A stretch of DNA of 64,000 nucleotides, taken from Haplodiscus bocki (taxonomy: Eukaryota). Made by a program: the position numbers and the translations under genes. A model generated the notes under the pieces. The model was not told the origin of the DNA, searched no databases, and saw only the letters and a program-made list of their open reading frames with translations. The DNA lies in the NCBI GenBank assembly GCA_965655095.1, contig OZ296659.1:70866001-70930000 (forward strand), given 5' to 3'. Shown here one piece after another: positions 9,901 to 59,100 of the stretch. Position 1 is the first letter of the stretch, and the number at the start of each line of letters is the position of its first letter.

Positions 9901-9950
9901 GTGTACATAGCATTCATTACTCATGGTCGATTAAGAATTATTGATACCAT
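6940..9950 (+). mobile_element. Polinton-like fragment (block B), ending in a probable decayed pPolB N-terminal region; duplicated at 11305-14312
   Basis: NREMNGTD*VYDRTSSMKIDL..KCSACVNL..RYSM*NLVYIAF (~9735-9920) resembles the E..GSGW.F......I / SYV.LP / KYCF.WSI.A segment of Polinton polymerase N-termini. The 7200-8400 part has a diverged homologue at ~21180-22400 inside the Polinton fossil. Confidence 0.45.
7369..7479 (+). ncRNA. tRNA-derived RNA polymerase III cassette (degenerate; second copy at 11734-11845)
   Basis: TATATAAA lies ~30 bp upstream. A-box TAGCATAGTGG (7376-7386) has a pairable D-arm GCAT-AGTGGTA-ATGT. B-box GTTCAATTC is at 7434-7442 and a T6 terminator at 7474-7479. T-stem and acceptor stem do not pair, so this is not an intact tRNA. 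Confidence 0.5.
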
Positions 9951-11304
9951 GATTTTTGTTCGTCAACCCTGTTTCTGTGTGAGGACCAGCTACGTGTGGA
10001 TTTAGCAATGGTTTGTCTTGGTTCAATCCAATAAACAAGTAGGAAGCTTTCCCAACATCGCAAAGTTTGCTAGTCAGCAAAAGGGCAATATCAACGAAAA
10101 ACTGTTCATCTTGGCTTCGGTGGCGTTCTGTTGTCTTAAAAACCGCCCGGGACGAATATTTCAAGTTGTTCTCATTTCTGCTCTGCAATTTCTCTACTTT
10201 TGTTTTTTTTCACTCCGTGCGTTTTGGCGGAAAGAAAAAATTCAATTAGAAGAATCAGAATCAATTCAGGTTGACTCCAGACGCTGGTAAATTTTGTTCG
10301 TTTAAGTGAAAATTGAACGGAATGCTATCACGAAAGTAAACAACTCTTCTTCTTTTTGTGACGAATCAAAAAAAAGTTGATCATCCCAATTCATTTTCGT
10401 CATTGAATGTAGTCTGCAATCATGGAGACATTTCACCGATAACAGGGTGCTGTTACTTTGCGTAAACTTTAGGTGTTACAAGCGGCCCATCTTGGAGAGT
10501 AACCTCCTAATTGACCAGTATCCGGTAAACTACTTACAGATCTTTTTCGGTTTGTCTGTAAACATTTTGGTTGTCCCTTTTGTGCTAGTCAATGAGCGAT
10601 GACTGAACCAACAGTTTGGAGTTGATAGCGGTGGCGAAAAACATTGGAAGAACGAAAAAAGAAACGTTATCATTTCATTTTCCGAACTCTGAAAAATCTT
10701 TTGATGCAGCAGTGAAAACGTTTGAAATTCAAGAATGCTAAAGGTCTGAGATTCCTATGTGTTACGAATTTTTTGCCTGAATACAATTTTGCAAAAAAAA
10801 ACAAAAGTTTTGATGCAACGTTCACTAGCGACAATCATTAACTGTTAAATCAACATAAGAAAACAAAGTTTCCTCGCTAAAATTTCACATGAAGCATCAT
10901 AATCGGCTCATTAGCATCACGTCAACAACAACGTCTCCTTAATTTCCACAAGAGAAGCAATAATGGCCCTATCAACAAACGCCGGCCATTGGAAAAATTG
11001 ATCGCAAGTATGTACGAACAATTGCGAAAAAGCAAGAAAAAAAAAGATTTTTCTTTGATGTTTTTTGCGGAAACTTTGAGAAAAATAATTCGCAGTCAAC
11101 AGAAATGGGACACGGGCAATGCATTGTTGCTCCTTGATCCTGTTGAGACAACATATAGGAGTGAATACGAAGATATAATGGTAGTGTGTACTTTTCGATT
11201 TGAGGTCACAGTGACTTATAGCGAGCAAAAGTTATGAAGTTAGGTTCACTCCAGAAACCAAAAATCAACGTTTCTTCTTTGATGTGTTTTCAACTTGGTG
11301 AGTT
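9951..11304 (-). mobile_element. Second copy of BEL/Pao RT fragment (block A)
   Basis: Direct repeat of 5585-6939, which carries the BEL RT-like motifs. Confidence 0.6.
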
Positions 11305-14300
11305 ATGAAAAAATGCATGATGTCAACCAGAAAAATTTCTTTTACTGCCTAAAAAACATACACATAGAAAATTTAAACATATATCCATCCATCCGAAATC
11401 CATACAGAAATGCATTTACGAGAACGCAAAGACACTTTTTCTGGTTGACATCATACGTCTTTATAACCCACTCCTCCTCTCCTCCCAGTTGAAAACACAT
11501 CATTGAAAAAGCAATGATTTTTATTTTTGGGAATGTAATTAAATTCAATACTTTTGCTTGGTGTATTTCACAGTGATCTCAAAACGATATATACGCACGA
11601 CTATTTCCATTCAGACTTTCATAATCGCATTTGCACAAATTTTTGTCTCACAAAAAACTTCAATGACTAAAGTCAATTGCAATTCTGAAAGTGAATTAAA
11701 TGTATATAAACCTTGAATATCTACTCAAATTCGCCTCCTGTAGCATAGTGGTAATGTTACCGATCAAAAATAGGGCCATTGCAGTCTGAGTGTTTGGAGT
11801 TCAATTCAAATCATGTCGCATTGTCTTTGCCGATTCGGTTTTTTTCATCAACAAATCGCTTCGAGAAAGCGACACGAGGTTGCTTTAGGAGAAAATCTGA
11901 GTCATTGTGCTCGAATATATTGGTTTGATAAAGGGGGAAACTAACCAGGAATGCTATGTTGGACACACTTGAAGAAGTCAAAATACAAAAGTCGACCAGT
12001 GAAGTTTTTGAAAAAAGTTTCAGATAAGATTTTGCTTCATATGAAATTTCAGCGGCAGCTACAGTTATATCGAGATATGTGAATAATTTTATATTTAATT
12101 GAAGCCTAACTGAATAATATAAGCTGTGACAAAGGTAACAAAAATGCGGGGGAAAAAATCAAAACCTATTCAAAAAAAGCAGGTGAAAAAAGTAAAACGC
12201 GATCTTTGTGGTTCAAATATGAATTAAATGTACTTACCAATTCTATTCAAAATTTTCCAAAAGTTTACATACAACAAGTTAGAAATCAAAATGTGGCAGT
12301 TGTAAAAAATTTTTGATGTTGTTTATTTTGTAGAGCAAAACAATGATGAAAAACAAGGCGCCGAGAATTTTTATAGATCAGTATGTGTAATTGACAGAAG
12401 AATTCAATTTCTGTTTCATTTAAAAACGGTAAAGTTACTGCAGACAAAATTTGAAAAGGCTTTTCAGTTAAAATTTCTTTCTGAATGGTAGAATACGAGA
12501 TTATTACCCCCGTGGCCTAAAAATGATTAAGCTTCTGTTTTGATAGAAATTACTCATGAAAAATTATTTGTCGTTATGAATGTTATCAGCCAATTAGCTA
12601 TAGCATTCTATAGTGAATATTCTAGAAGAAATGACCAACCTAAATATAGGTCAAAAATAAAAATTGATATTATCAATGAAAGCGAGGAACTTCTTCTTAC
12701 CAGCTTGCCAGTGACAACCATCCCCACAGAAAATAATGTATATGAAAAAGAATTGAAATTTGATTTGAAGATTATCACGGGAGGTAAAAACATAAAAATC
12801 ATAAATAGGTGTAATAATCATTATAAAATTGAAACTCTAAAACTTGACTTGTTGAATTTGGTTTAGATTTAGACATCCTTTTTTCTAAGTCTTCCACCTG
12901 CATAACTTCTCATCACTTGATTATTTTGAATCGCCAAATCAAATTTATCATTGTTTTCTCTTAATTTCTGAAACAAAAAAGTTCCTTAGAACATGAACCA
13001 TGTAATAAAACAAGGAAAATACAAAAAAAGGACTTTCTCATTTTTCCAATGAACTTTTCACGAGAGCCGGACATTACCAACACATCAATTTCAAAAACCC
13101 TGTTTTTGAAAGGGTCAAATATCAACATGTGAAAGGGGTAAAAAACGTATTTTTAAAAGAAGAAACATGTTTGCAAATTAAAAATGCAACTATTGTAAAA
13201 CATTTTTTACAATCACTGAGGGCTAATAACATATTACAGCTCAATTTTACTTAGAAAAGAAAAGCAACTTTATTTCAGATAAAATTTCATCGAACAAATG
13301 ATCGATACGAAGACAACCACAAGAAAGGAACTTTCTTATTGTTGAGAGAAAGACTTACAACAAAAGTTTTTTAAAAGGCACTTCAATCCAAAAACCCATT
13401 TGAAAGATACAGGTGAAAAAAAGTTATGTGAGAAAAAAAAACTTTTACAAAGCACAAAGTAAAAAAAATGAATCTTGGATCTGAAGGGTGTCTGAAAAAA
13501 ATGAAAAAGCAATGTGAAGTTTGTAAAAACAGTCTCAGAGACAAAAACGAACAAACTTACACAAAAATAAACATTAAAAAAGGTATAAAAAACACAACCA
13601 ATCCGGATAGAATAGTTTGTACTTTTGGTCACCTTTGTTTTAGGAGAAGAAATGTTAATGAACAAAAGAAATCGTAAACAAATATTAGGAGTATTAAACA
13701 AGAATAAAAATTCGGAAAAAGCAAAAAAATTCCAGCTACACCATCTCTTGGTTTGCAAAAAGAATGTAAAACAGAATCAAAATCCAATTCACGTGATTTT
13801 TTGATACCTCTCTTGAAATCAAAACTTTAAAAAAAGAAAAAACAATCATTGAAAACGATATGAAGTGTTTAGTTACAGAAGTATGTACAAACTATTCCAT
13901 TTCAATTAGGCAAACTAAATTCAGATTTCAAGAATCTTTAAAAGTTTCTTTTTGAAACAAAAAGTTACAATTTCAAGGAAGTGAAAGATTTGATTTTATT
14001 AATGACTCGTTTGTAGACTTGAAAAGGAGACAAAATAACTCACTAGAAAGCATAGATGGAATAGATACCGAACCCGAAAATACTGCGTCTGTTGGAAACA
14101 GAGAAATGAACGGAACACATTAGGTTTATGATCGAATTTCTAGTATGAAGATTGATCTTCAGAAATATATAATAGAAAAATGTAGTGCTTGCGTTGATCT
14201 AAAACAAAAAACTTATCAATTCTCAATAGTCAAAACAAAATGGTTATTCTATGTGGAATTTGGTGTACATAACATTCATTACTCATGGTCGATTACGAAT

Positions 14301-14312
14301 TAATGATACCAT

Positions 14313-15660
14313 GATTTTTGTTCGTCAACCCTGTTTCTGTGTTAGGACCCGCTACGTGTGGATTTAGCAATGGTTTGTCCTGGTTCAATCCAATAAACAA
14401 GTAGGAAGCTTTTCCAACATCGCAAAGTTTGCTAGTCAGCAAAAGGGCAATATCAACGAAAAACTGTTCATCTTGGCTTTAGTGGCGTTCTGTGGTCTTC
14501 AAAACCGCCCGGGACAAATAATTCAAGTTGTTCTCATTTCTGCTCTGCAATTTCTCTACTTCTGTTTTTTTCACTCCGTGCGTTTTGGCGGAAAGAAAAA
14601 AATTCAATTAGATGAATCAGAATCAACTCAGGTTGACTCCAGACGCTGGTAAATAATGTTCGTTTAAGTGAAAATTGAACAAAATGCTATCACGAAAGTA
14701 AACAACTCTTCTTCTTTTTGTGACGAATCAAAAAAATTGATCATCCAAATTCATTTTTGTCATAGAATGTAGTCTGCAATCATGGAGACATTTTACCGAT
14801 AACAGGGTGCTGTTATTCTGCGTAAACTTTGGGTGTTACAAGCGGCCCATCTTGCAGAGTAACCTCCTAATTGACCAGTATCCAATAAACTCCTTACAGA
14901 AATTTTTCGGTTTGTCTGCAAACATTTCGGTTGTCCCTTTTGTGCTAGTCAATGAGCGATGACTGAACCAACAGTTTGGAAATAATAGCGGTGGTGAAAA
15001 ACATTGGAGGAACGAAAAAAGAAACGTTATCATTGCATTTTCCGAACTCTGAAAAATCTTTTGATGCTGCAGTGAAAACGTTTGAAATTCAAGAATGCTA
15101 AAGGTCTGAGATTCCTATGTTTTACGAATTTTTTGCCTGAATACAATTTCTCAAAAAAAAACAAAATTTTTGATGCAACGTTCACTGGGGACAATCATTA
15201 ACTGTTAAATCAACTTAAGAAAACGAAGTTTCCTCGCTAAAATTTCACATGAAGCCTCATAATCGGCTCATCAGCATCACGTTAACAACAACGTCTCCTT
15301 AATTTCCAAGAGAGAAGCAATAACGGCCGTATCAACAAACGCCGGCCATTGGAAAAAAATGATCGCAGGTATCTACAAAAAACTGCGAAAAAGCAGGAAA
15401 AAAAATTTTCTTTGATGTTTTTGCTGAAACTTTGAGAAAAAAAATTCGAAGTCAACAGAAATGGGACACGGGCAATGCATTGTTGCTCCCTGATACTGTT
15501 GAGACAACATATAGGAGTTATTACGAAGATATATTGGTAGTGTGTACTTTTCGATTTGAGGTCACAGTGACTTATAGCGAGCAAAAGTTATGAAGTTAGG
15601 TTTACTCCGAAAACCAAAAATCAACGTTTCTTCATTGATGTGTTTTCGACTTATGGAGTT
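14313..15660 (-). mobile_element. Third copy of BEL/Pao RT fragment (block A)
   Basis: Direct repeat of 5585-6939; lies between pPolB-like N-terminal and C-terminal remnants. Confidence 0.6.
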
Positions 15661-29552: not shown

Positions 29553-29752
29553 NNNNNNNNNNNNNNNNNNNNNNNNNNNNNNNNNNNNNNNNNNNNNNNN
29601 NNNNNNNNNNNNNNNNNNNNNNNNNNNNNNNNNNNNNNNNNNNNNNNNNNNNNNNNNNNNNNNNNNNNNNNNNNNNNNNNNNNNNNNNNNNNNNNNNNNN
29701 NNNNNNNNNNNNNNNNNNNNNNNNNNNNNNNNNNNNNNNNNNNNNNNNNNNN
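29553..29752. other. Assembly gap (200 N)
   Basis: Run of n characters. Confidence 1.
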
Positions 29753-38194: not shown

Positions 38195-41100
38195 ATTTCT
38201 AACTTTTACGACAACTTGGAAGAACTTGGACATAATGCGGATTCCCTCATCAAGAGAAGTTGTGTTTGTGGAACCTTCCTGAATTCTTTTAGAGCGAAGT
38301 CTACCCATTGCTGTGACAGTTTCAGACCAAGTACTGTCTTTGGATTTTGTGTTCCAGGTTTGTTCAGTTTTCCCTTGCGACAAATTTTCTCAACCGAGGT
38401 CAATTGAATATCCTCGTCATATCATTGCTATCGTTTATTTTGCTGAAAATGCTATAATCAAGGACAGAGGAGAGTTTACAGAATCGCGTCAGAAAATTTT
38501 GAATTTTTTAGTTTTTTCCTGTTTTAGACTGTGATTGGAATCATTACCTGTGTGAACCCAATGATCCATGCTGGAAACAGTCCGGTTAGTGGAAAAAACT
38601 TGTTTTAATCTTGCATTCATTAAAAATTGTTTCTATGGAAATTATAATTTCAAAAGCGAAGTTCGATTGATTGTGAATTAAAATTCAAGTCTAATGGAAA
38701 CACATTTTTTTTACTTGAAAAAACTCAGAACCATGAAAATTACCCGAAAAATGATTTTAACTCTGAACTATATGATCTTTCTTGCTAATGAGAGGCAGTA
38801 GTTTCATGTAGAAAAATACTTTTATGGAAAGTAAGTAGTAGTTGTAAAGGTGTATTTGCCCCCGGGGGGGGGGGGTGTTGAGCGAGTAACCACATATGGT
38901 CATTTACTCAACCCACACAAAGCCAAAAGTTATTACGTAATTGCAAGTGGAGATACTACAATGACGTAACCGATAGGTAAATCTGGCTATTTGTTATGTA
39001 GCACACGAGTCGTAGGCCAGTTCTGAGCAATTTTGAATGTCGAAATCGAGACGCGACAACGACGTCACAATTAGATGCGACAACGACGTCACAATTAGAT
39101 CTCAGTTACAGAATCCTTCCCGATTATGGAGCTATCGCACGGTAATCCCAGCCGATAGTGACAAGACTTAATGGAAAGAATCTAAATTGTGGCAAGTCAC
39201 TACCTAAGCAATGCTCTTGACATCATCGAAGCACGACAATGGCCGGCAAAATGTGAGACCTATTTAAAGTCAAAACGGAAATTTTGTCTTCATATTTCTT
39301 AAAAAACACCAAAAAATCATCCCATCTTTTCAATCGCATGTTTTATAAGATAACCCATGGACAGCTCCTTGTCATTTTTGTTGCTGCTATGACGGCTCTC
39401 CAATCATTTCCGGCGCTGTGAGACTTGAAAGGGAAAAATTGAAACCAGCACAGAAAAGCAAAAACCTATTACAATTCGAAAAATTGAACGTAACGATTTC
39501 CTTTTATGATGTCTAATACTGCAGGTAGTTTGAACTTCTAGTTTATATTCTGCTCTGAGGAACTGTGAAGTTGCCGACAATTTTGGCACCGCAAAACTCG
39601 ATTAATAAAAAGGAGGACCCCGCAAAGAATTCGAAGTTTCTTTTACAAATTTTGAGTGTAAAATCCGATATTTTACATTAGAGAGCTCAGTATTGCTGAA
39701 CATTGGATTCTGTATTTATCAATCTGAGAAGAAATATAGTGTCCGAGCTTTCCGGCACTGTGAGATTTGATCAAAAACTTGAAAACCAGTGAGGAAAGGA
39801 AAAGAAAACTTAATGCGATTTCAAGGTTCAAAGGTAGAAAAATAAATTGTTCAAAAGTGTGCAGTATCACTGACATTTAGAACTTCCATAAAACATTGAA
39901 AAAAGGTAGAAATACCGGCACTTTGGGCCTTGTGGGACTTGAAATGGAAAATTTTGAAAGAGTGAAAACTGAAATACCCTATACTGCAGTTTCAAAAACT
40001 CAAAAAACGGAATCCATTTTAGAGTATTTAGATTTTCCATTAATTTGAACTTTGTCGACTATGCTGAAAAACTGAAGTTTTTCGACAATTATGACACTGT
40101 GAAATTGGATTGAAACGTTTGGAAAGAGGCAAAAGAATGAAATTACCTATTAGAGTTTTGACAGATTGAACGTCCGGATCTTAATTCAGAGAGTTCAAAA
40201 TTGCTGAACAGTGGAACTTCTCTTCACAAGTAGGAGAAACTAGGACAATCCGGCTGAATTCAAAACTGCACGACTTGATCAAAGAAAAGAAAAGCAAGGA
40301 AATGAAAAAAAAACCTAATTACAATTTGAAAGTTTAAACGTAGAGAAGTTATATGATAAAATTTGATATTCTCAAAAGAAAGAACCTTTTAAAAACTTTC
40401 TAAGCAATTGTAACACGTCCGACCTTTTGGGCACTGTGAAATTTAAGAAAAAACTATAAACACAACAAATATGGGGAAGACCTATTAAATTTGAAACTTT
40501 TGTAGAACGTCTTCAAAAAGCCTTTTTGCGGTGATAATAAGATCGTTCACTGAAACATATGAGGAACTGCTAAGTTTCCAAAGATTCGGAACTTTGAAAA
40601 ACGATGATTACGGCAGATTTGACGAAAAAAATCTTGCTTCAAATTGAAAGTATATGGGCAAGGGACATGATTCATAATGCTGATGTTTGAGTAGAATCAA
40701 AACATTTCAGAGAACCTGAAAACTTCCGGCACTGTGAGACTCCATGGAGATGAATAAAGCCAGCCATAATTGGACAAAAACTTTGGAATTTCAAAATTTA
40801 AACGTACTGCAGTTTATACGGTGTTTGACATTGCTAAAATCTTGAACCTTTTTGGGAAAGTTTCCAGGAGGTGTAAAATTTCGAACACCTCCTTGACTGT
40901 GCGGCTCATTTAAAAAGTTTCGTTGAGGCAAAAATTGAAACCTGTCAGAAGTTGAAAAGTCAGACGTACAGTTCTCAATTCGTAGAGCCTGAAATTTTCG
41001 GTTCATGAGAAATTTGCGGAAAAAATCTGAATTTATGATATTTTTCAAACTTTCGGCAAGAGACCTAATGAGAAAATAGAAAGACAGAAAGAAAAGGGAA

Positions 41101-44100
41101 AATCAATTTCAATTTCGGAACTTCGTGTTAGGAAATTTTCTTATTGTGTATATAATTAATGAACAAAACATTGTTGTACTGTCAATTCAAAGAAATTGTG
41201 TTAGTTCCAACTTTCTCCACAGTTTGAGATTTGATGATGTTATACGAGGCTAGCGAGAAATTGAGAGAACCAATATCACTTTGAACACTTCGTAGGGAGG
41301 CCTCTTCTTAGCGTCTAAAGGTGCTTCACTCTGAAATCATTCACGGCTTTTCAGCGGAGCGACGACTTCGGCAGTGTATATCTGGCTTGGAAAAACTGAA
41401 AGCAGCAAAAAAAGGAAAAAACTGGTGAAATTTGAAAGTTTGATTGTAAGAAAGTAACTTAACCTAGAACCAATAATTTTGCTGAGCATTAGAAAGCCTG
41501 TGAACCAGCTTATGAAACTGTAACGTTTCTAGATCTTTCGGCACTACGTGACCTGATAGAGAAATATAAAAGCGGCAAATAGGCAAGAAAACCTGTCTCA
41601 AGGTGAAAACTTCAAATTTAGCAGTTTTTTTATCTTTCTAAAACTCTACTGGAAAAAATTTCTACAAAAATTTGTCAGAAACAGTAACCAGGTCAACATT
41701 TTCACCATTGTCAGTCTTGAGTGTACAATCTGCAAGACGGAAAAGGAACTGCATGTTCGTCGGTACAAAATTGTTCTTCTGCAACTGATAAGTATTGAGA
41801 CAAGTACTTTGTTTACAGAAACGATTTTATACACCAACAGAAAAGAAACATGGAGGCGCGAAAATTTTTTCTCGGGATATGTTCAGAAAATTCAAAAACA
41901 GAAACAAATTATTGTTCTTTCTGGAAATTTTACTTGCTTTGCGAAAAAATTAGTGTGGACTCGAATCATTCAAATGTTTTCGAAAATGGAATAATGTCTG
42001 CAATTTGAAAAGGTCAGGACTATGAGAGTTGCTGGGAAAAACCTTATCCAAGACTGAAAGTAATCTTCTTCTTGTATTGGAGTTCTTCTGCTCAAATAAG
42101 TAAAATTTGCATACAAAGGTCACGACGGAATTAAGCTCTGCATGTGGAGTTGCACATTTATAGCGTCTTTGTTCATCTCTCCTACTTGTTTTCTGCTCAA
42201 AAAATCCCAGTCTAACGTAAGTTTATAATCTTTTTGACAATTTTGTCTTTTTTCGTGGAAGCGATTTTTTTTACCAAGGTAATAAATGAAAAAAACATTC
42301 TTGCTGAAAATCAAAGACAGGTTCTGCAAAACTGTTGGCCATGTAAATCTACTTCCAATTTTCTCAACGTGTGAGTGGTAGAAAGTATGAATTTTGCCCT
42401 GATTGGCTTTAAGTAGAGAAGTTTGAGCTGATGTTGACGTGAGCTTTCAAAAAAGTAGTCAATACAACTCTTCAAGTCAATCATCTGCAAGAGTCTGATC
42501 TCCAAAAAAAAACAGAAAAGGTATGGCGCAGAGAAGTTGAGGGTATAATACAGCAATTGGTATCACCAAATCTTCATGTGCAACAACAAAGAATATAATT
42601 TTTTGTTGTCATTCAATCATCGCCGGATAACTCCGGGAAAAATGTTTATACCAAATAAAAGCTTCGAGAGAAAGTTTCGTAAAAACTGATGGAATTGGTA
42701 GTAGTGCGCTTTGCTGGATCTCAACGAAGTCTCTACGACACTTTGTTAACAAATGGTTGTGTTGAAACTTGCGATCCTTGGCCGAAAGAAGTCGTTATTA
42801 ATCATAGCGAGAGGTTTTGTATAACAGCCAAATGAAAATCACTTTCACGATCGTTAAAGATTGACCCAGTTAAAGAAGTGAAAGCAAAAAGATGAATTTC
42901 TCTGCTCCTATGAACCTACGGACAATAACTAGAGAACAATCGAATGCACACAAATCGTGGTTTACGGAAACACTTGGAACAGTTGCAATCAACGAGCTGG
43001 AGTTTCTGCAAAATTTTTCCGATGGTAGATGTTTAAAGATAACAAACAAAGTCATACTTCGAATTCAAATTTCAGATTTGCAAAAATGTGAGTTGCCTTT
43101 TTCTTACTATTCCAAAAAACTGAGAACCCAGTTCCCTATTTGTGGAACTTTCTGCCAACGGAGTAGTTTGCTTTCTCTCTAGTGGCTTTATATTTTTTCT
43201 AAAAGCAAATACAACGAACTGTAATCACGCGTTTGTTGCGAACTCTTTATGATCCATATGGGATTTTTGAATGTGTAAAAAAACGATAGCACATTTCCAA
43301 TCAAAAGCATTTACTTCAAAAAATGAATCAAAACAGAAAGTAGAACCAAATCAACAATTGTTCAAATAGACCAACGCGGAGTTGCTTTCGTTAACAAAAT
43401 CCCAAATGAAAGCCTTCTTCAAGTCAACCTGAAAATGCATGGGGCTCAAATCTTACTCACCGAGCATTCTGATGCGGAATGGTTAGATGTGACAATAGTT
43501 AAATGAACAAAAGAGTTTCGTAAAAAGACTGCACTTTTTTTTAATTTTATCGAAACTACAAGTGATCGCTCATCGCATTCGTTTGAATTTGTGAAAAATA
43601 TTTTTCCAATGGTCTGATATGAATATTTTCAGCTCTGAGAGTCATTGAATTTACGCCTATGAATACACTACCTGACAGTTGTAACACAGCCCCAAAAATT
43701 TTTGCTGCCAAACCATCACTACCGATTTGATTACAAAGCAAGGACCACAAAAGATTGGGTAGGAACAATTTGAAAAAAAACAGGCGTCCCTCGAAGTTGG
43801 TCTGAAAACTTCAAATCTTGTTCCAGCTGACCACAAAATTGAATTTACTTCGATCGCAAGCTCTCCAAATCCCAAGAGGTGGTGATGAAAACGCATCCTT
43901 ACATAATCAAATCAATTAACTGCAGGATAGGTATAAGAACATCGAATAAAAAATTTAAACAATGCGAGGTGAATTGGTTACTATTCAAGAAAAAACTTCC
44001 CAAATGCAAGACTGGAGGAAATTCAATTGGTGATCAAACGGTTCCCCTCGGCAGGTTTGAAAGAGTTCCAACACTTGTATTCCGTCCACAGGACTGTGGT

Positions 44101-47100
44101 GAGTTTAAAAGAAGACATCGACACCAACGCATCAGAACAACGAAGTCTGGATAAACCAGTATGTAACTTGGAAGAAAAATGTGCGAGGAATCATTTTTTG
44201 GAAAAGAACTCAGCCGAGCAAACTATTACAAAACAAACGAACGAAACAGCGATAGTGATTGAAAGGAATAAAGGTGGGAGAGACCTAACAAAAAAAGTAG
44301 ATTTTCATTGATCATACCGCGAGAGGCCAGCGGAAATCGCAATGAGTTGGAGTTGGCCGCAGAGCAAAACATTGACAGATCGGATAGATTTTCTTGAAAA
44401 AAAGCTGTCGAATTTCAAACGAATAGAGACAAAGCAAGTCTCTTCCAACTATTTTTGCAGCGTTCGCTCAAAGAAACAAAACTTTTGGATTATGGACGCA
44501 TCGGAAAAATTATCCGGAAAATTGATGGAGTGAGTACTTTCTCAAACAATGCCAGAGTTCTTAGTAGTCAAAAACACGCAAGCAAAGTTTTAGACGAAAT
44601 TCTTCTTCGCGGTGTTTGCAGTCCCTGTTTCATACAAATCCACATGGTAATTTAGATTGTCTCAGAACTTTTCCTTGTGGGTACGATGTTGGTGATTGAG
44701 AAATCATCGCTACTTAATTAGCTTTAAGTCCAAAAAACTTTAGTGCTACTCCACTTTGACCCTTTCAGTCCTATATTGAAAAAATTGTATCAATCAAGAC
44801 GAACCAGCCGACAAATGGACACAAAAATAATTTCCGAGCAAACAAAAAAACATTTGTCTTCAAAGACCGACTCCGCAAACCAGCAATGACAGTGTAGGTC
44901 TTGACCAGTTCAAGTCACACCGGTTCGTTCAATAAATAAACCCCGTTTTTGAATGGAGCTATTTTTTGCATCAAGCAGCAAAATAGAAAGGAACACTTTC
45001 TGAAAAAATTCTGCAAAAAAACTGATTTGCAAAGAGGTTTCACTTTTAGTGGTTTCGCTTTCAGCAAACTTTTTGGTGTTGGTGTGCAGTCAGCCAATGT
45101 CAAAATGGACAGGCTCCAAATTGGAATTTACATCAGAAGAAAGTGTTTATGATTTTGTCCCACCTGTTAGACACTATGCATTTTCTCTTGACACAATGTG
45201 CGAGAAACACCAGTGGATAGTTTCTGCAATGCAAAAATTCCAGCTTCACTTGAAAGCAGAAAATTGTGAGCCCGAAGCATCGTACATGAATTTTGTTTCT
45301 CGGTTGACAACGGTCAACTCGAAGGAAATGACTTCTTCCCATTGATACATGTTGGCGTTCGCTGATTAAAACGACTTAGTTGACAATTCTACTTTACTTA
45401 CCAATCATTTTTTGAATGAACAATGTGAAATAAAAATGGTTTTTTTGCAGTTGACAAGCCTTCCCAAACAAAGAAGACTCTTTTGAACAGAAAAATATGA
45501 ACATTCATGTTTTGTAACAGATCAGTACAGCCGCACTCATTTCAAGAGGAATTCAAGCATTTCAAAATCAAATAGAAATGTAAAATTATTACACAAGCCA
45601 GCCAATCTAACTACAATACTAGACCGACATTGCTTTTTTAGAAAAAAAACATGAACTCCAGTTTCGGAAATTAAATTGAATATCAACTGCTGATCTGCGA
45701 AAGCATCAATGACAACTTGAGCTGTAGTTGAGCAATGCCAACACTTGTCTGTATACTCTTGATTATTGTTTCTCAGAAGATATCCACACTTTCCTTGTGT
45801 GCCAACAATAATGCATTCAGTATTTGAACCAAACACGTCACCAATGGCATCCACCGATAAACCAACCACAGACATCAAAAAATTTCTCTTTGATCTTTTG
45901 CTTTTCCTATTTGAAACAAGAATCCATAACCCAACATGCAAAAGATGTGTTACATGAAAGTTGCGTTTTGCGTCGATAAACAAACGAAAAAAACAATTTT
46001 GACGGGATGAAGGGCGAAACCGAAAACGTGCGGAAGATAGAAGTAGGTGAAAATCCTTCAGCAAATTCTCTAAGCTAGTAACTGGCCAAATCTGAGGTGT
46101 AGAATGAAATAATTTTGGAGACACTGAGATGCTTTAAAAACCTTTTCATCTCGAAAACTGTTCACATGATTTTTTGCTTGTATCTTTTGGCTGGGTTCAA
46201 GTGAAAAAGAAGCACGACTTGCAAGGTTTTGCCTTAGGTTGAAATTTTCTTTGGTGATTATGTGCAATACAGTTTCCCGGAAGGAATGCAATCAAAACAG
46301 AAAACTCTGTGAACCAAAACTGTCCCAATAAAAGGTTTTCGATTAAAAGTTAACTTTTTGTGTTTTTAAAGGAAAATTAATTTCATTTAAAAGACTCAGT
46401 CGAGTTTTTGTACATTTCCACGATTGTAAAGGAAGTGGTCCAACACTGAAAAACCTTTCTAAGTTTCTTAAAATCATGATAATAGGGTATTTGTGTAGTA
46501 TTTGCGTTTTTGTTCTGAAAAGAAATAGAAATATATCCCAGGGATGCAAATCTTCAAATAACCCATTTAGGGAGTAGGACAGAGGGTTAACGAACAACAG
46601 AAAAAAGGTCTTGAGGGTCAATCTTTCTGTCACACAAAGTTTCCAACTAGTTCTTTAAATGATTCACAGGTCAGAAGTCTTGATCCAAGAGAATTCTTCT
46701 CCTGACACCCAAAAACTTGCTCTTCTCGAAACCATTTGCATTTTTTCGAATTTCTTGCAGCTTGAGATTTTCTTCAGTCATGAAGTTTGATGTAAACTTA
46801 CAAACGTCCAATCAGTCGAAAGAAAGCTTCTCCGAAAAATCCTATTTTTAACTATCTCCAGGTGAATTGTCCTTGTTTACGAAAAATTCTTACAAAACAT
46901 TAATAATTTCTTGAAGAAAAAGTTAAACTAACTACAAGAAAACTTTCGGAGTTGCCTTTGCTCCAATTAACTTTGCAATTTGAAAAAGTGTGTCACCGCG
47001 AGTGGAAACTATCACTTTTTTGCTTGCTTCTGCAGTTTTTAGATGATTACAGTCATCACAATTTTATGCTACATTACCATTTGTCTCAAACTTTGAACTG

Positions 47101-50100
47101 ATCGTCGCAGCACAGTGTTGACAAACCCACTTTTGCTGAATTTTCTAAAAGTTGAAAATTTATGTACTTCCTGGTTTTTCAATGGAACCATATCGTTGAT
47201 TGCAACTGTTCTAAGAGTTTCCATTAACAACGCTTTGTATGCATTCGATTGTTCTCTAGTTTTTGTCTGCAGGTTCTTAGGAGCAGAGAAATTCATCTTT
47301 TTGCTTTCACTTCTTCAAGTGGCTCAATATTTAACGATCGTAAAGGTAATTTTCATTTGGTTGATATACAGAAATTCTCGCCAAGAATTATAACGACTTC
47401 CTTCGGCCAAGGATCACAAGTTTCAACACAACCATTTTGTAACAAAGTGCAGTGGAATTTTTGTTGAGATCCAGCAAAGTGCACTACTACCAATTCCATC
47501 AGTTTTTACGAAACTTTCTCTCGAAGCTTTTATTTGGTATAAACATTTTTCCCGGAGTTATCCGGCGATGATTGAATGACAACAAAAAATTATATTCTTT
47601 GTTGTTGCACATGAAGATTTGGTGATACCAATTGCTGTATTATACCCTCAACTTCTCTGCGCCATACCTTTTCTGTTTTTTTTTTTGGAGATCAGACTCT
47701 TGCAGATGATTGACTTGAAGAATTGTATTGACTACTTTTTTGAAAGCTCACGTCAACATCAGCTCAAACTTCTCTACTTAAAGCCAATCAGGGCAAAATT
47801 CATACTTTCTACCACTCACACGTTGAGAAAATTGGAAGTAGATTTACATGGCCAACAGTTTTGCAGAACCTGTCTTTGATTTTCAGCAAGAATGTTTTTT
47901 TCATTTATTACCTTGGTAAAAAAAATAGCTTCCACGAAAAAAGACAAAATTGTCAAAAAGATTATAAACTTACGTTAGACTGGGATTTTTTGAGCAGAAA
48001 ACAAGTAGGTGAGATGAACAAAGACGCTATAAATGTGCAACTCCACATGCAGAGCTTAATTCCGTCGTGAATTTTGTATGCAAATTTTACTTATTTTTAG
48101 CAGAAGAACTTCAATCCAAGAAGAAGATTACTTTCAGTCTTGGATAAGGTTTTTCCCAGCAACTCTCATAGTCCTGACCTTTTCAAATTGCAGACATTAT
48201 TCCATTTTCGAAAACATTTGAATGATTCGAGTCCACACTAATTTTTTCGCAAAGCAAGTAAAATTTCCAGAAAGAACAATAATTTGTTTCTGTTTTTGAA
48301 TTTTCTGAACATGTCCCGAGAAAAAAGTTTCCCGCCTTGATGTTTCTTTTCTGTTGGTGTATAAAATCGTTTCCGTAAACAAAGTACTTGTCTCAATACT
48401 TATCATTTGCAGAAGAACAATTTTGTACCGACGAACATGCAGTTCCTTTTCCGTCTTGCAGATTGTATACTCAAGACTGACAATGGTGAAAATGTTGACC
48501 TGGTTACTGTTTCTGACAAATTTTTGTAGAAATTTTTTCCAGTAGAGTCTTAGAAAGATAAAAAAACTGCTAAATTTGAAGTTTTCACCTTGAGACACGT
48601 TTTCTCCCCTCTTTGCCGCTTTTATAATTCTCTATCAGGTCACGTAGTGCCGAAAAATCTAGCAACGTTACAGTTTCATATGGTTGTTGACAGAGTGTAT
48701 AATGCTCAACAATATTAATGTTTATTTGTTAGGTTACTTGCTGGCAATCAAACTTCCAATCTGTACCAGTTTTTTGTATCTTTTTGCTGCTTTCAGTTAT
48801 TCCCAGTCAATTATACACTGCTGGAGTAGTCGTAAAAATACAACGCCGCTGAAAGAAAAGTCATAATCAAATTCAGATTGCAGCAGGTTCAGACGCTATG
48901 AAGCCGCCTTCCAACGAAGTTTTCAAAGCGAAATTGGTTCTCTCAATTTCTCGCTGGCCTCGTAAAACACCATCAAATCTCAAATTGTGGAGAAACTTGG
49001 AACTAACACAATTTCTTCGAATTGACAGTACAACAATGTTTTGTTCATTAATTATATACAAAATAAGAAAATTTCCTAACACGAAGTTCCGAAAATGAAA
49101 TTGATTTTCCCTTTTCTTTCTGTCTTTCTATTTTCTCATTAGGTCTCTTGCCGAAAGTTTGAAAAATATCATAAATTCAGATTTTTTCCGCAAATTTCTC
49201 ATGAACCAACAATTTCAGGCTCTAGAAATCGAGAACTGTACGTCTGACTTTTCAACTTCTGACAGGTTTCAATTTTTGCCTCAACGAAACTTTTTAAATG
49301 AGCCGCACAGTCAAGGAGGTGTTCGAAATTTTACACCTCCTGGAAATTTCCCCATAAAGATTCAAGATATTAGCAATGTCAAACACCGTATGAACTGCAG
49401 TACGTTTAAGTTTTGAAGTTCCAAAAGTTGTTGTCCAATTATGGCTTGCTTTATTCATCTCCATCGACTTACAGTGCCGAAAATTTCCAGGTTCTCTGAA
49501 ATGTTTTGATTCTACTCAAACATAAACACTAAGAATCATGTTCCTTGCCCATATACTTTCAATTTGAAGCAAGATTTTTTTTCGTCAAATCTGTCCCAGT
49601 CAGCGTTTTTCAAAGTTCCGAATATTTTGAAACTTAGCAGTTCCTCATATATTTCAGTGAACGTTCTTAATTATCACCGCAAATAGGTTCTTTGAAAACG
49701 TTCTACAAAAGTTTCAAATTTAATAGGTCTTCCCCATATTTGTTGTGTTTATAGTTTTTCCTTAAATTTCACAGTGCTCAAAAGGTCGGACGTGTTACAA
49801 TTGCTTAGAAAGTTTTTAAAAGGTTCTTTCTTTTGAGAATATCAAATATTATCATATAACTTCTCTACGTTTAAACTTTCAAAGTGTAATTAGTTTTTTT
49901 TCATTTCCTTGCTTTTCTTTTCTTTGATCAAGTCGTGCAGTTTTGAATTCAGCCGGAATGTCCTATTTTCTCCTACTTGTGAAGAGAAGTTCCACTGTTC
50001 AGCAATTTTGAACTCTCTGAATTAAGGTCCGGACGTTCAATCTCTCAAAACTCTAATAGGTAGTTTCATTCTTTTGCCTCTTTCCAAACGTTTCAATCAA

Positions 50101-53100
50101 AATTTCACAGTGTCATAAATGTCGAAAAATTTCACATTTTTTCAAAATTGTCGACAAAGTTCAAAATAATTGAAAATCTAAATACTATAAAATGGATTCC
50201 GTATTTTGAGTTTTAAAACTGCAGTATAGGGTATTTCAGTTTTCACTCTTTCAAATTTTTCCATTTCAAGTCCCACAAGGCCCAAAGTGCCGGTATTTCT
50301 ACCTTTTTTTCAATGTTTTATGGAAGTTCTAAATGTCAGTGATACTGCACACTTTTGAACAATTTATTTCTCTACCTTTGAACCTTGAAATCGCATTAAG
50401 TTTTCTTTTCATTTCCTCACTGGTTTTCAAGTTTTTGATCAAATATCACAGTGCCGAAAAGCTCGGACACTATAATTCTTCTCAAATTGATAAATACAGA
50501 ATACAATGCTCAGCAATACTGAGCTCTCTAATGTAAAATATCGGACTTTACACTCAAAAATTGTAAAAGAAACTTCGAATTCTTTGCGGGGTCCTCCTTT
50601 TTATTTATCGAGTTTTGCGTTGCCAAAATTGTCGGCAACTTCACAGTTCCTCAGAACAGAACATAAACTAGAAGTTCAAACTACCTGCAGTATTAGACAT
50701 TATAAAAGGAATTCGTTACGTTCAAATTTTCGAATTGTAATAGGTTTTTGCTTTTCTGTGCTGGTTTCAATTTTTCCCTTTCAAGTCTCACAGCGCCGGA
50801 AATGATTGGAGAGCCGTCATAGCAGCAACAAAAATGACAAGGAGCTGTCCATGGGTTATCTTATAAAACATGCGATTGAAAAGATGGGATGATTTTTTGG
50901 TGTTTTTTAAGAAATATGAAGACAAAATTTCCGTTTTGACTTTAAATAGGTCTCACATTTTGCCGGCCATTGTCGTGCTTCGATGATGTCAAGAGCATTG
51001 CTTAGGTAGTGACTTGCCACAATTTAGATTCTTTCCATTAAGTCTTGTCACTATCGGCTGGGATTACCGTGCGATAGCTCCATAATCGGGAAGGATTCTG
51101 TAACTGAGATCTAATTGTGACGTCGTTGTCGCATCTAATTGTGACGTCGTTGTCGCGTCTCGATTTCGACATTCAAAAATGCTCAGAACTGGCCTACGAC
51201 TCGTGTGCTACATAACAAATAGCCAGATTTACCTATCGGTTACGTCATTGTAGTATCTCCACTTGCAATTACGTAATAACTTTTGGCTTTGTGTGGGTTG
51301 AGTAAATGACCATATGTGGTTACTCGCTCAACACCCCCCCCCCCGGGGGGGGGCAAATAGACCTTTACAACTACTACTAAAGTAAAATACGTTCAAATCC
51401 AATGGGCCAGCTTTATATTTTTTTTCAAACGAAACCTTTTATCCCACCAGAAGCGTCAGAGCTCGCGTTGCCCTCCCAGGGATGAATTATAACTTTCATA
51501 CTGAGTTACTGAGACTGAGATAGGCCCAAAGGTAACAAAAAAACTTGCAAAGTTCTAATTCTGGGTCGTAGAAAGTTATTTCTGGCCCAGGAACGTACGC
51601 TTCACATAATCGTGTCACGTGCTGAATAATTATTCAATTCTCATAAACTCACGCATAATCAAACCTGCTGTCCGTTTTATCTTTGACAAAGAGCTGGTCC
51701 CAGAGCTGGAACGTACTAAGTTATCTGTGGTATAGTCAACCCGGAAAAACTTTCACGTTTCGAAGTTCAATTTTTTTTGTTGCTGATTACTCTCTCAAAA
51801 AAGATTTCTACAGCTTGACCATGGAACCAGATTATTTTCACATCTCTTTTTTGTAAAGATAATTAGAAAGTTTGTTCATTTGTTTTGAAGGCAAAGAAAG
51901 GATGGTAAACATAGACTATCTGGTTGAATTATCTTGGTACATTGATTTCTGTGACCCAGAAACGGAAATGTTCCAGTGCAAAATTGGATACTTTACTGGA
52001 CCTCAGTCTAAAGAACTGGGCGTGTTTTGCTACGACATTTGTTTACCCAGCGATGTCGCAACCGAAACAAGTTGCCAACTTCTCCGAGACCGGTTCTGCA
52101 ATGAATGCAACATGTTGAATGTGTTAAATTCAAGTAATTGGTGTGATAAAGATACTGGAAAATGTTTATGTAAAGACGGCTTTGAGTTTGGAAGGTTACC
52201 TAGTTTTTTAATTGAAAAATTACTATTTAAGAAGCAAAAAATGATTAATACGGAATAGACAATATTAATATTAAAAAGCTCCTTTGCAGTTAATTGGCAT
52301 TTCAGAGAAAAAAAGTTAGTTGAAAAAGTAGAAGTTTAGTCGCTTTTTCCAATTTTTTGTCACATAAGTTTTTATTTACATTATCTGCACCATGGACTTC
52401 TTCCGACAGTGAAATTAAATATTTTCACTATGAAAACATTGGAAAATTTCTTTTGGAAAAAATTGTTTCAATTTTTTTATCGATGGAGGATATAGCTTCG
52501 AAGCAAATATCAAATGACATCAGAACTGTCGATCGATAATTCCAATGTCATTTAACAAAAGTTAGCCGAAAGTTTACATCATTCAATGCCTTTCAGCTGT
52601 GACGTCCACTGTGCATCCAACAGAACAGGATTCGACTGTGGAAAAGACTGTGGCATTGTTTGTCAAAACAAGGATGCCTCTTGTTATGAGGGAAAATGCA
52701 TATGTCCAGCAGGAACAAAAGTACATTCCCATTCGTTAGTTATCGTGACGATCGGTGTAAAATCTTGTAACGGAAGTAAAGACTTTCTTGAACGTGCCTA
52801 CGCTCTACAAAATATGATTAACAAATTTTACTGCTTCCCACCATGTGCAATAAATTTTTGATCACAAATTCAAAAGACTGTCAAAATGGATTCCATCCCT
52901 TAAAGTACTAGATGCCTCACAGAACCTTAGGCTGCATGGAAAATTTTTACAAGATTAACAAATTGTCCGTTGCATTCAGATTTTGTTTGTTGCGTAAAAA
53001 ATGTGTAAAAGTTCCCAGTAGCAGTCAATTTTTCATGCATATAAAATTTTACATGCATCATGTAAAAACTTGTGAAAAATAACAGGCAAGTTACAAAAAC

Positions 53101-56100: not shown

Positions 56101-59100
56101 CACAGTTCTCAAAAAAATGAAAACGTTTTTTTCTTGAAGAAAGCACTCTTTCTTCATCATATTACGTTTAAAAATTTCTAATTTTTGCCAAAAAAAACCT
56201 CATAATTAGGGCGGGAAAGACATTTTAAAGAAATAATACCATTTGATACGCTTTCTATAGCAAATTTGCCACCTTTAGCGATTTTGAAAAAAATCAACTT
56301 TTTTTCAAAAAACGCATCTTTCTTCTCAAAAAAGACCCAAACTTTGAACGTTTTGAGAAATCTTACTGTTTCAGTCGCATTCTTTGACAGACTTGCTATA
56401 TCTGGGCGTAAAAAATCACGCTCAGAAAAGTGAACAGACGAACAAACTGCCGATGTGGCGTGAACGCAATTGGCAAACATCGGCTAAGAAAAACGTTCCA
56501 TTTGAAAGGAAGATTTTGCTTTCATAATATAAATAATATGGCGCAAAATAAAATTCACGGGGCACGATACAAAAATTTTAGCATTTGCTTGAATACGAAA
56601 AATATTGAATGATGGAAATGGCATGGAAGAAGTTCTCGTTTTGAGGCTTCATAGCATCTCGCCGTTGACCAGGTCAATTCCATCTATCACACCGGCTGCC
56701 ATGTATGTTCAATGCGTGACCACCAGTTTGAAAAATTCAGGTGCTTGTTGTTCGGCATCTCCTCCATGGCCGTAGGCGGTTCATCAATCCTGGCCAACCG
56801 GTGAATATCGATAATTTTTGACAGAAAAAATTTGAATTAGTCACCTGACATCTCTGCTATTTCAATTAACTGAAGTAACTCAAGTAATTGAAATAATTTA
56901 ACTGCGCACTTCAATTGAAAAAAAATTGAAAAGAGTTGATCACATAAATGCAAACTCTTAAAATACTGAACATTTTAAAAACCATCCTTTTTAGGCTGGA
57001 TACGAAGGTTTCCGAAAATTTAGATATTCTTTTCTGAAATGGATTCACATGTTATTCCTCCTACAATTTATCTGATGTTTCTATTTGTTTTTTTGGGGTG
57101 GGGGGGGGGGTGGGAGCAGGAACAACGTCTGTGTCTGTTTCATTAATAACATTTAGAGTCATGCCATGCTCGCACTACATATTATTACACTGACATTTAA
57201 ACTTTATTCCCGCTCAACGTTTAGACGTTACTCTTTAGTTTTCATCCCGGTATAAGTTTAGACATTAGCACCACTCTTACAATCTTTCTGATGATCTTTC
57301 ATGGCGAACGGTATCATTATAAAAAATAAAGAAATATACTAATTTATGTTTATGGTGAAATACATTTTTCTGCACACCTACTAAATGACGCTTCCATTTC
57401 CCTTGAGTGGTCCATGCATGCGTATATTTTAAGGTACGCACGTTTTGCAGGCGCTTAGACAGGTTTGAAACGGTGGTCCATCAATGGCCAAGCAGGTGAA
57501 GAAATGGAGGTGGCTAGCTCTGGATCACCACTAATACACCGATGGTGCATTGGAGGGTTGGACCTGGACCATCGGTGGGATTCCACCCAGTTAATAAAAA
57601 TTATCACAAAACGTGTACTATTTTCTCCTGAGACATATTTTTAGCATATGCTTCCATGGAAGAATTTTGGTATGTTCTGCTGAATTTCATCAAATTCATT
57701 TCGAATGTCAGGGATCTGATGCTACTAAAAAACAAAAGCTGTGTTTGCCTGTCATTTTTTTCTTATAATTGAAATAAAATAAATTGAAAAAAAACTTCTT
57801 CTTCTTCTTCTTTGCGTGCCTTGTCAATAGACTTGGGCAACCAATAACGTCCGTTCGTAAATTTTCGACATCAGGCTCTCCATGGATTCTTGCTGGGTCC
57901 ATTTTTTAATTTGATCCATATACTGTATCGATGGTTTTCCTCTCTTCCGTTTTCCATTTATTTTTGCTGTTGTTATGATGTTTCCAGTTGTCCTTTTCTC
58001 ATAACGTGTCCAAAAAAAAGACACTTGTCGCTGCACAATTTTTTGAATTAATTTTCGTTTTCCAATAGTTTCTCTGAGTACCTGTTGGTTTGTCTTCTTT
58101 TCTTTCCAGCTGATCTTTTGCATTCTCCGTATGAACCACATTTCGGTCGCTTCCAGTCTTTTAATTTGTTGTTGGTTCAATATCCAATTTTCACATCCGT
58201 ACAGAAGTATAGGCATGACATAACAATTCAAAATTCGGTATCGCAAGTCAAACGGCATTTTAAGATTAGCTAGTATATTCTTCATGTCCGCAAAAGCTAT
58301 TTTCGTTTCGGCAATTCGACATTTAATATCAGTCATGTGTCCTCCATTAGTCGTTATCCAGCTTCCCAGGTATTTGAATTTTTCCACTTCTTTAAGAACT
58401 TCACCATTTAGTTTGATCTCTGTTTTCATTTTTCCATCTCCGTTTAGTACCGTGATGACCGTTTTTTTCGTATTTATCTCCATTCCAAACTTTCTACATT
58501 TCGCGTTGGTTTTTTCCAGTAGAATCTGTAGATCGTCTGCGGTATTTGCTGTTAAAACTGTATCGTCTGCGAATCGGATATTGGTTATATGGCCTCCGAT
58601 ATTGATTCCATTTTCTCTGTCTATTGCTCTCATTATCACCTCCGAATATAATGAGAATAGATCTGGCGATGCAACGCAAAAAAACCTACGTGACTTCTAT
58701 TTTGACTGTCTCCAATGTGAATGTTTTTTTTGTTCCAAATGAAAGAATGTGACTGGTTTCTTCTCATTCACCCTCATGTAGCAAATGATCTCCTGTTTTT
58801 CCTTCAGTTGACCAAAGAAAACCAAAGCCGTTTTCTACCTCGCGACGGGATTTGCAAACCATGCCCTATCGACGACCAATGTGAAGGAATGTGCGATGAA
58901 AGATGTTCGTTTGGAATTCCAATGTTTGGCGAATTCCCGTATTGTGATCCAGTGGATGGCCATTGTTTGTGCAAATCTGGGAGAGATCCTTTGAAAGATT
59001 GCAAAGACGTCTGCGCCAGTGGAACATTTTATATTCATGGCCAAACCAAAAAGTGTGAGCCTTGTGAATGCGCGAATGGAAAACTATGTGACCCAACAAC

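Follow-up and report, generated by a model that had tools for sequence, protein, structure and literature searches.

Large gene-less fold-back elements in Haplodiscus bocki, probable dependants of co-resident Mavericks

The 64-kb stretch of Haplodiscus bocki DNA analysed here (the window; contig OZ296659.1 of assembly GCA_965655095.1, positions 70,866,001 to 70,930,000) contains a fold-back element, hereafter the window copy, at 38834-51378; coordinates without a locus name are positions within the window. The element belongs to a family of gene-less fold-back elements of large size (12.5-19.4 kb), which are probably non-autonomous dependants of the Mavericks, also called Polintons, residing in the same genome. 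We assign it this non-autonomous status because of its ends, its 6-bp target-site duplication (TSD), the presence of the family at several loci, the lack of genes, and the co-residence of Mavericks with the same end build.

Fold-back structure and its family

The window copy is bounded by junctions that read AAAGTA followed by AGTAGTAGTTGTAAAGGT on the left and ACCTTTACAACTACTACT followed by AAAGTA on the right. At the base composition of the window, a direct repeat matching at 6/6 positions exactly at the arm edges has a chance of ~4e-4. The outermost sequence begins AGTAGTAGT, and the 18 terminal bases are identical between the two ends. An initial annotation had proposed a 12,545-bp unit with AG..CT/(AGT)n termini and a perfect AAAGTA duplication, and the junctions agree with it. 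The features of the window copy are listed below, with the strand where a feature has one.

38828-38833: left TSD, AAAGTA, identical to 51379-51384
38834-51378: whole fold-back element, 12,545 bp, delimited by the repeat ends; the same unit is present in an independent contig
38834-38842, plus strand: terminal (AGT)3 repeat, with the mirror copy (ACT)3 at 51370-51378
38859-38875: subterminal C5G12 homopolymer run, with a mirror run C11G9 at 51334-51353
38877-38912: subterminal imperfect palindrome around CCACATATGG, with a mirror copy at 51297-51332
38933-38940: perfect 8-bp palindrome TTACGTAA, with a mirror copy at 51269-51276
39049-39100: 24-bp tandem repeat, 2.2 copies, from the tandem-repeat scan, with a mirror copy at 51109-51160
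38834-42995, plus strand: left arm, 4,162 bp, from the blastn arm alignment
42996-47192: middle, 4,197 bp, made up of three stretches by comparison with family copies
45537-46133, minus strand: 198-codon open frame, a pseudo-open reading frame that served as the probe by which the family was found
47193-51378, minus strand: right arm, 4,186 bp, from the blastn arm alignment
51379-51384: right TSD, AAAGTA, a 6/6 match with the left duplication

The arms are 94.25% identical over 4,191 columns by blastn (95.0% with gaps excluded), and their similarity ends sharply at 42995 and 47193; no similarity was detected between the middle (42996-47192) and either arm. With 207 mismatches and 15 gap events between them, the arms are not pristine. 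The mismatches cluster strongly (dispersion index 6.1 per 100 bp), such that stretches with 0-1% mismatches adjoin stretches with 16-23%; the outer 600 bp of the two arms are almost identical, and some inner stretches are ~20% different. GC content is 34.5% and the CpG observed/expected ratio is 0.89, values that make a vertebrate host improbable. Within the middle, no convincing repeats were found that would point to a nested transposon. When the terminal 127 nt were folded as single-stranded DNA, hairpin stability was not above that of shuffled sequences (z = -0.76). Because the single strand is not unusually stable, the subterminal imperfect palindrome is more likely a candidate binding site in duplex DNA than a hairpin. 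The TTACGTAA palindrome resembles, and may be, a site for basic leucine zipper (bZIP)-type host factors.

The complete element with both flanks is also present in ctg82022, a contig with 57x coverage from the long-read ENA assembly ERZ26859043, which we reached through an exact database match to the 195-aa open reading frame (ORF) of the middle. The two sequences agree at 99.9%, with 13 mismatches and 5 gap openings in 20.3 kb, and the differences are spread across flanks and element alike. The locus thus has two concordant sequences, and the structure is not a fold-back assembly artefact. The insertion had further been described as fresh, a view that we do not retain: the arms differ by 5%, the second assembly has the same insertion, and a 6-bp TSD would often outlast decay of this extent.

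Matches to the 198-codon pseudo-ORF led to further loci on contigs of ERZ26859043 (within L002-L011), and look-ups of integrase relatives led to L004 and L005. This probe is interior sequence, which biases the sampling towards long copies, and short derivatives would therefore be missed. The sample comprises three complete copies (the window copy, L008 and L009), with lengths of 12.5, 14.7 and 19.4 kb as sampled by the interior probe, and three partial copies, on different contigs. The members other than the window copy are as follows.

L008:2792-17539: complete copy, 14,748 bp, with arms of ~6.3 kb and a centre of ~1.9 kb
L009:330-19708: complete copy, 19,379 bp, with a right arm of ~7.5 kb and a centre of ~0.9 kb
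L002: partial copy, cut by the contig end
L007: partial copy, truncated where the contig ends, with an arm of at least 6.4 kb
L003/L004: partial copy, its centre interrupted by a nested Maverick
L006 and L011: family fragments only

As had been anticipated, there are multiple insertions with distinct TSDs: AAAGTA in the window copy, AACGAC in L009 (6/6 match), and GATTCT and TATTCC as the flanks of L008 (4/6 match). The other copies are 65-75% identical to the window copy, and homology at 63-79% identity extends along nearly all of it, except at ~43034-43290; the terminal 200 bp are the best-kept part across the family (78%). Each family end opens with (AGT)2-3 or with a variant differing by one base, and the ends share a common order in which the triplets are followed by a G run ~25 nt in, an imperfect palindrome centred on CCATATATGG, and the TTACGTAA palindrome. 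The imperfect palindrome is among the best-preserved stretches of the family ends, and the TTACGTAA palindrome is preserved in 7/9 of them. Upstream of one family member lies a tandem array with a period of ~370 bp (L002:290-1810).

Comparison with these copies divides the middle of the window copy into three stretches. The first, of ~0.7 kb, includes 43034-43290, which is without any homologue; the second (~43700-44550) is the family's centre; and the third (~44550-47192, ~2.6 kb) is the inner part of both arms in L007, L008 and L009 and is present on the right side only in the window copy. The left arm of the window copy is thus without its inner 2-2.6 kb and has the ~0.7 kb of partly unmatched sequence in that place instead. 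Because ~44550-47192 belongs to both arms elsewhere, the plan of the family, as judged from these alignments, is a near-palindrome with a small centre, and the window copy is an internally deleted version of it. The near-equal thirds to which attention had first been drawn are real in size (4,162, 4,197 and 4,186 bp) but incidental, as arms elsewhere measure 6.3-7.5 kb and centres 0.9-1.9 kb. The inner boundary of the arms varies among copies, with arms of 4.2, 6.3, at least 6.4, and 7.5 kb. In the left arm of L009 (2282-6436) there are about six tandem copies of a ~700-bp unit that is single in the right arm, and the arm lengths of that copy are therefore unequal.

Absence of recognisable genes

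Pfam searches with 46 ORFs (minimum length 45 aa) taken from the left arm and middle gave no match (best E = 0.018-0.07). These ORFs of the window copy included no match to the rve integrase, a domain that the same scan readily detects in L003, L004 and L005. Rfam and tRNA scans of the element found nothing, no homologue was returned for a 99-aa ORF of the terminal kilobase, and the genes called on family copies have no Pfam families on record.

The 198-codon frame (the 195-aa ORF) is longer than the longest frame in 300/300 shuffles, and it has no Pfam relative and no PDB relative by sequence search. An exhaustive protein search with it recovered 12 database ‘proteins’ (P0001-P0012), which are ORFs predicted by a metagenome gene caller, with TGA read as tryptophan, on non-coding relatives in one assembly. 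Between the element and five family members that are 30-35% diverged from it, substitutions showed no 3-base periodicity in any 300-nt stretch; the largest codon-phase ratio in the element was 1.45 (1,300-2,450 comparisons per stretch). In the control on Maverick genes, phase ratios of 5-10 were reached in several stretches (300 comparisons per stretch). We conclude from these comparisons that the element is non-coding, the 198-codon open frame included, the unusual length of that frame notwithstanding. The initial statement that no intact gene is present therefore stands, on the Pfam, Rfam and tRNA scans and the lack of codon periodicity. The accompanying proposal of a Polinton interior decayed almost past recognition does not, since the interior is homologous to gene-less family copies and holds no coding relic.

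With only TAA and TAG counted as stops, the longest frames of the element reach 382, 317 and 291 codons, compared with 229 +/- 40 in shuffles. These long frames are taken to be an effect of composition because codon periodicity is lacking. Use of TGA as a sense codon was likewise considered as evidence of coding and rejected, as the read-through is that of the metagenome gene caller and no codon periodicity accompanies it. The public protein collection contains many ‘proteins’ from ERZ26859043 that are ORFs of this kind, with TGA read as tryptophan on eukaryotic non-coding DNA, and such spurious entries are useful as handles to locate repeat copies.

Elsewhere in the window, a run of 200 Ns lies outside the element at 29553-29752, and a tandem array with a period of ~4,362 bp occupies 5585-15660, its segments present in 2-3 copies that are 76-100% identical. 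A reverse-transcriptase fragment (RVT_1, E = 1.2e-10) is found on the minus strand at 57824-58639, and 1/12 flanking ORFs scanned has a weak Retrotrans_gag match (E = 5.5e-4). An exact database look-up of the reverse-transcriptase ORF returned no entry. By these domain matches, retroelement remains are present downstream of the fold-back element.

Co-resident Mavericks and concerted arms

The protein database contains 1,849 homologues of the Maverick integrase and 1,759 of the Maverick 450-aa gene (E <= 1e-5); nearly all are ENA records, and 9/9 of those looked up come from ERZ26859043. Some clusters at 90% identity have 530, 336, 307 and 248 members, many of them full length, and the Maverick load of this genome is unusually heavy and apparently recent.

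One intact-looking Maverick (L005:1-14683) has 16 tightly packed ORFs that are open under the standard code. Among them are an rve integrase of 312 aa, which scores 38.4 bits where the cut-off is 32.6, and a Pox_A32-like packaging ATPase of 314 aa, which at 22.6 bits falls just below the 22.8 cut-off (E = 8e-5). The ORFs after the integrase, of 267, 136, 450 and 131 aa, match by number and position the vertebrate Maverick module of integrase, minor capsid, PW, major capsid and protease (PMC8097293). A 1,451-aa gene continues beyond the locus, with no Pfam family recorded for it, and three L005 proteins searched against PDB by sequence yielded no useful match. The end of this Maverick reads ...CTCTTACTACT and then AACCTA; it closes in ...ACTACT, and a C run and a palindrome lie immediately inward. 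Near this end (L005:14440-14560) are two ~45-bp tandem units with ATTACGTCA-type motifs, which parallel the TTACGTAA palindrome and 24-bp repeats of the fold-back family.

A second Maverick is nested in the L003/L004 family member, whose centre is interrupted at the site equivalent to window position ~44740. It carries an rve integrase, is 72-84% identical to L005, and has an end that reads ...CTACTCTACTACT and then AGGTAC. This nested element is decayed: in L004, 13/16 of the L005 genes compared have in-frame stops, 8 genes need more than one reading frame, and the 450-aa gene is ~56% covered. The same composite is found at L003:2218-16609 and L004:7350-20996, 95% identical over 13.7 kb; copying of the composite, whether as a unit or through segmental duplication, therefore postdates the nesting.

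The Maverick copies number well over a thousand, and the ends of these two were compared with those of the fold-back family. Both share with the family ends the succession AGTAGTA(G/A), ~20 nt, a G run and then TTGA, and a palindrome lies next to the TTGA in family and Maverick ends. Among vertebrate Mavericks, (AGT)2//(ACT)2 ends with a perfect 6-bp TSD are the most common published signature (PMC8097293); Maverick ends read 5'-AG...CT-3' and carry a short tandem repeat, (AGT)2 or (AG)3. This upholds the initial identification of AG..CT/(AGT)n termini and a 6-bp TSD as a Polinton/Maverick signature. The terminal triplet repeat has been read as serving jump-back priming (PMC8097293), and the Polinton model includes terminal repeats of 1-3 bp and a single-stranded intermediate shaped like a racket (PMC4196379). 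The earlier suggestion of mobilisation in trans by Polintons can accordingly be kept as probable, given the Maverick-type ends, the 6-bp TSDs and the co-resident Mavericks. The interior is specific to the family and, by blastn, is not a deletion product of L005: a comparison of the window element with L005 returned nothing.

Within-copy arm identity in the terminal 1.4 kb is 97.4% for the window copy, 86.6% for L008 and 96.5% for L009, identity between arms of different copies is 69-75%, and the arms cluster by copy. The sampled copies are star-like, all being ~70-75% alike. Because the fold-back plan is common to all lineages, the arms have, by these alignments, been kept alike while the lineages drifted apart, i.e. 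the arms evolve in concert.

We propose a mechanism in which the rve integrase of a Maverick would insert the element in trans, giving the 6-bp duplication, and a protein-primed polymerase would begin copying on the triplet repeat, jumping back as Mavericks are proposed to do. The single strand, once displaced or excised, would then pair its arms into a ‘racket’ that is almost all handle, with a stem of 4 to 7.5 kb and a loop of 1-4 kb. Mismatch correction within the folded strand, or a copy-back switch that re-makes one arm from the other, would keep the arms alike, and we infer that either would also account for the differing inner arm boundaries. The conserved duplex palindromes near the ends may bind proteins of the element or the host.

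Alternative explanations and significance

Several results weigh against dependence on Mavericks with arms renewed in a folded strand. Beyond the first 7-8 nt and the general build, no subterminal sequence match was found between the family and the two Maverick ends, so that any surviving helper is not one of these two. No empty-site paralogue of the element flanks occurs within the 64-kb window, and no extrachromosomal form was seen among the assembled contigs. As regards a polymerase, the first 218 aa of the 1,451-aa L005 protein contain only a C2H2 finger, and as regards a capsid, the AlphaFold model of the 450-aa Maverick protein, made from a shallow alignment, has a mean pLDDT (predicted local distance difference test score) of 37. 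Finally, plain chromosomal gene conversion, without any fold-back intermediate, could maintain the likeness of the arms.

This last point can be framed as an alternative in which integration does depend on Mavericks, and the arms are alike only through intrachromosomal gene conversion after an old burst of insertion. The patchy arm mismatches, 0-1% beside 16-23%, resemble conversion tracts, and the star-like set of copies would fit such a burst. Yet the perfect 6-bp duplication in 2/3 complete copies and the 18 identical terminal bases of the window copy sit awkwardly with it: survival of a perfect TSD through ~15% ageing in place is somewhat unlikely (an estimate of ~0.15 per copy), and conversion alone has no effect that would vary the inner arm boundaries among copies. 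We regard this alternative as unlikely, and the intact duplications make us lean slightly towards regeneration of the arms at copying over conversion in the chromosome. A bolder possibility, which we consider similarly improbable, is that the family is a true Maverick satellite, copied by the Maverick machinery from its (AGT)n ends as a self-paired, hairpin-like strand, kept at 12-19 kb by packaging into Maverick capsids and thereby spread between cells or hosts. If that were true, the concerted arms would be the first evolutionary footprint of the postulated Polinton ‘racket’ intermediate.

It is rather doubtful that the family instead represents non-autonomous fold-back elements of an unrelated cut-and-paste group, for example IS3EU-like or another DDE type, with a coincidental likeness to Maverick ends. 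Such a reading would sit well with the want of a helper with matching subterminal sequence, and long terminal inverted repeats (TIRs) on non-autonomous elements are known there from Galileo and Foldback (PMC3573991). However, the first 7-8 nt, the distance to the G run and the TTGA are common to the family and two Maverick ends of the same genome, (AGT)2 with a 6-bp TSD is the leading vertebrate Maverick signature (PMC8097293), and the domains seen in ~190 kb of loci are those of integrase, ATPase and retroelements, with no other transposase. Decay in place of an autonomous Maverick is very unlikely, even though the size of the window copy is just below the 12.7-24.6 kb range of intact vertebrate Mavericks (PMC8097293): Pfam scans reveal no protein relic, there is no DNA match to L005 although the decayed Maverick of L004 is still recognisably similar to it, and the interior is common to other gene-less copies and has no codon periodicity. 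Chimeric long reads can create long inverted duplications, but an assembly artefact, or a palindromic duplication made by the host, is extremely improbable here, given arms that are 95% rather than 100% identical and lie 4.2 kb apart, a target duplication exactly at the repeat ends, the same structure in a second contig at 57x coverage, and relatives at other loci.

Taken as dependants of Mavericks, the fold-back elements share with Mavericks and Polintons the (AGT)n/(ACT)n ends, the 6-bp duplication, the terminal inverted repeats and the 12-20 kb size range. In contrast to Mavericks, the window element has no polymerase, integrase, ATPase, protease or capsid gene, and its interior is unrelated to Maverick DNA. 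Its inverted repeats are also far longer, at 4.2 kb here and up to ~7.5 kb in relatives as compared with 46-1,447 bp in intact vertebrate Mavericks (PMC8097293), so that the window arms are ~3x the reported maximum of 1,447 bp. TIRs well beyond the group norm are known from butterfly polintons, in which they are ~2 kb long, carry hexon and adenain genes and belong to autonomous-looking elements (bioRxiv 10.1101/2025.02.07.637071). The fold-back repeats, unlike these, have no coding content and account for at least two thirds of the element.

Like the fold-back elements, miniature inverted-repeat transposable elements (MITEs) lack genes, are flanked by inverted repeats and are presumably mobilised in trans. 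They are shorter than ~1 kb, whereas the fold-back element is 15 to 100 times longer, and the sampled lineages all exceed 12 kb, in a sampling biased to long copies. Copy-back defective genomes and panhandle repair are known for protein-primed linear replicons of the adenovirus type. The fold-back elements resemble such genomes in that one arm is an inverted copy of the other, the breakpoint is lineage-specific, and the tandem repeat at the end is suited to jump-back priming; they differ in being chromosomally integrated with a TSD and having no helper gene left, and they are known from assembled contigs. Foldback and Galileo elements make 7-9-bp duplications, with ~9 bp for Foldback and MuDR-like fold-back elements, and have arms composed of tandem sub-repeats. 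The duplication here is 6 bp, and the tandem-repeat scan found only the 24-bp unit in 2.2 copies. The likeness to these Drosophila elements lies in non-autonomy, in long inverted arms that dominate the element, and in a structure that varies by copy (PMC3573991). Transpovirons and Tlr1 are also Polinton-related linear replicons with TIRs that depend on another element or virus, but they encode a helicase, a Zn-ribbon protein and others (PMC5499653), whereas the fold-back family encodes nothing recognisable. In the literature searched, we found no description of gene-less, multi-kilobase fold-back dependants of Mavericks, and non-autonomous Polintons receive only passing mention, in relation to Tlr1; curated repeat libraries may hold non-autonomous Polintons.

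The copying and movement of Polintons and Mavericks are known only from models that invoke protein priming, a racket-like strand and 6-bp integration. A gene-less family that keeps the cis-acting parts marks the sequences that are important, namely the triplet repeat, the G run ~25 nt in, and the palindrome as a candidate binding site, and its concerted arms would offer a sequence-level read-out of intramolecular pairing. As probable dependants of Mavericks, these elements suggest that virus-like elements can have very large non-coding parasites, which annotation by homology overlooks.

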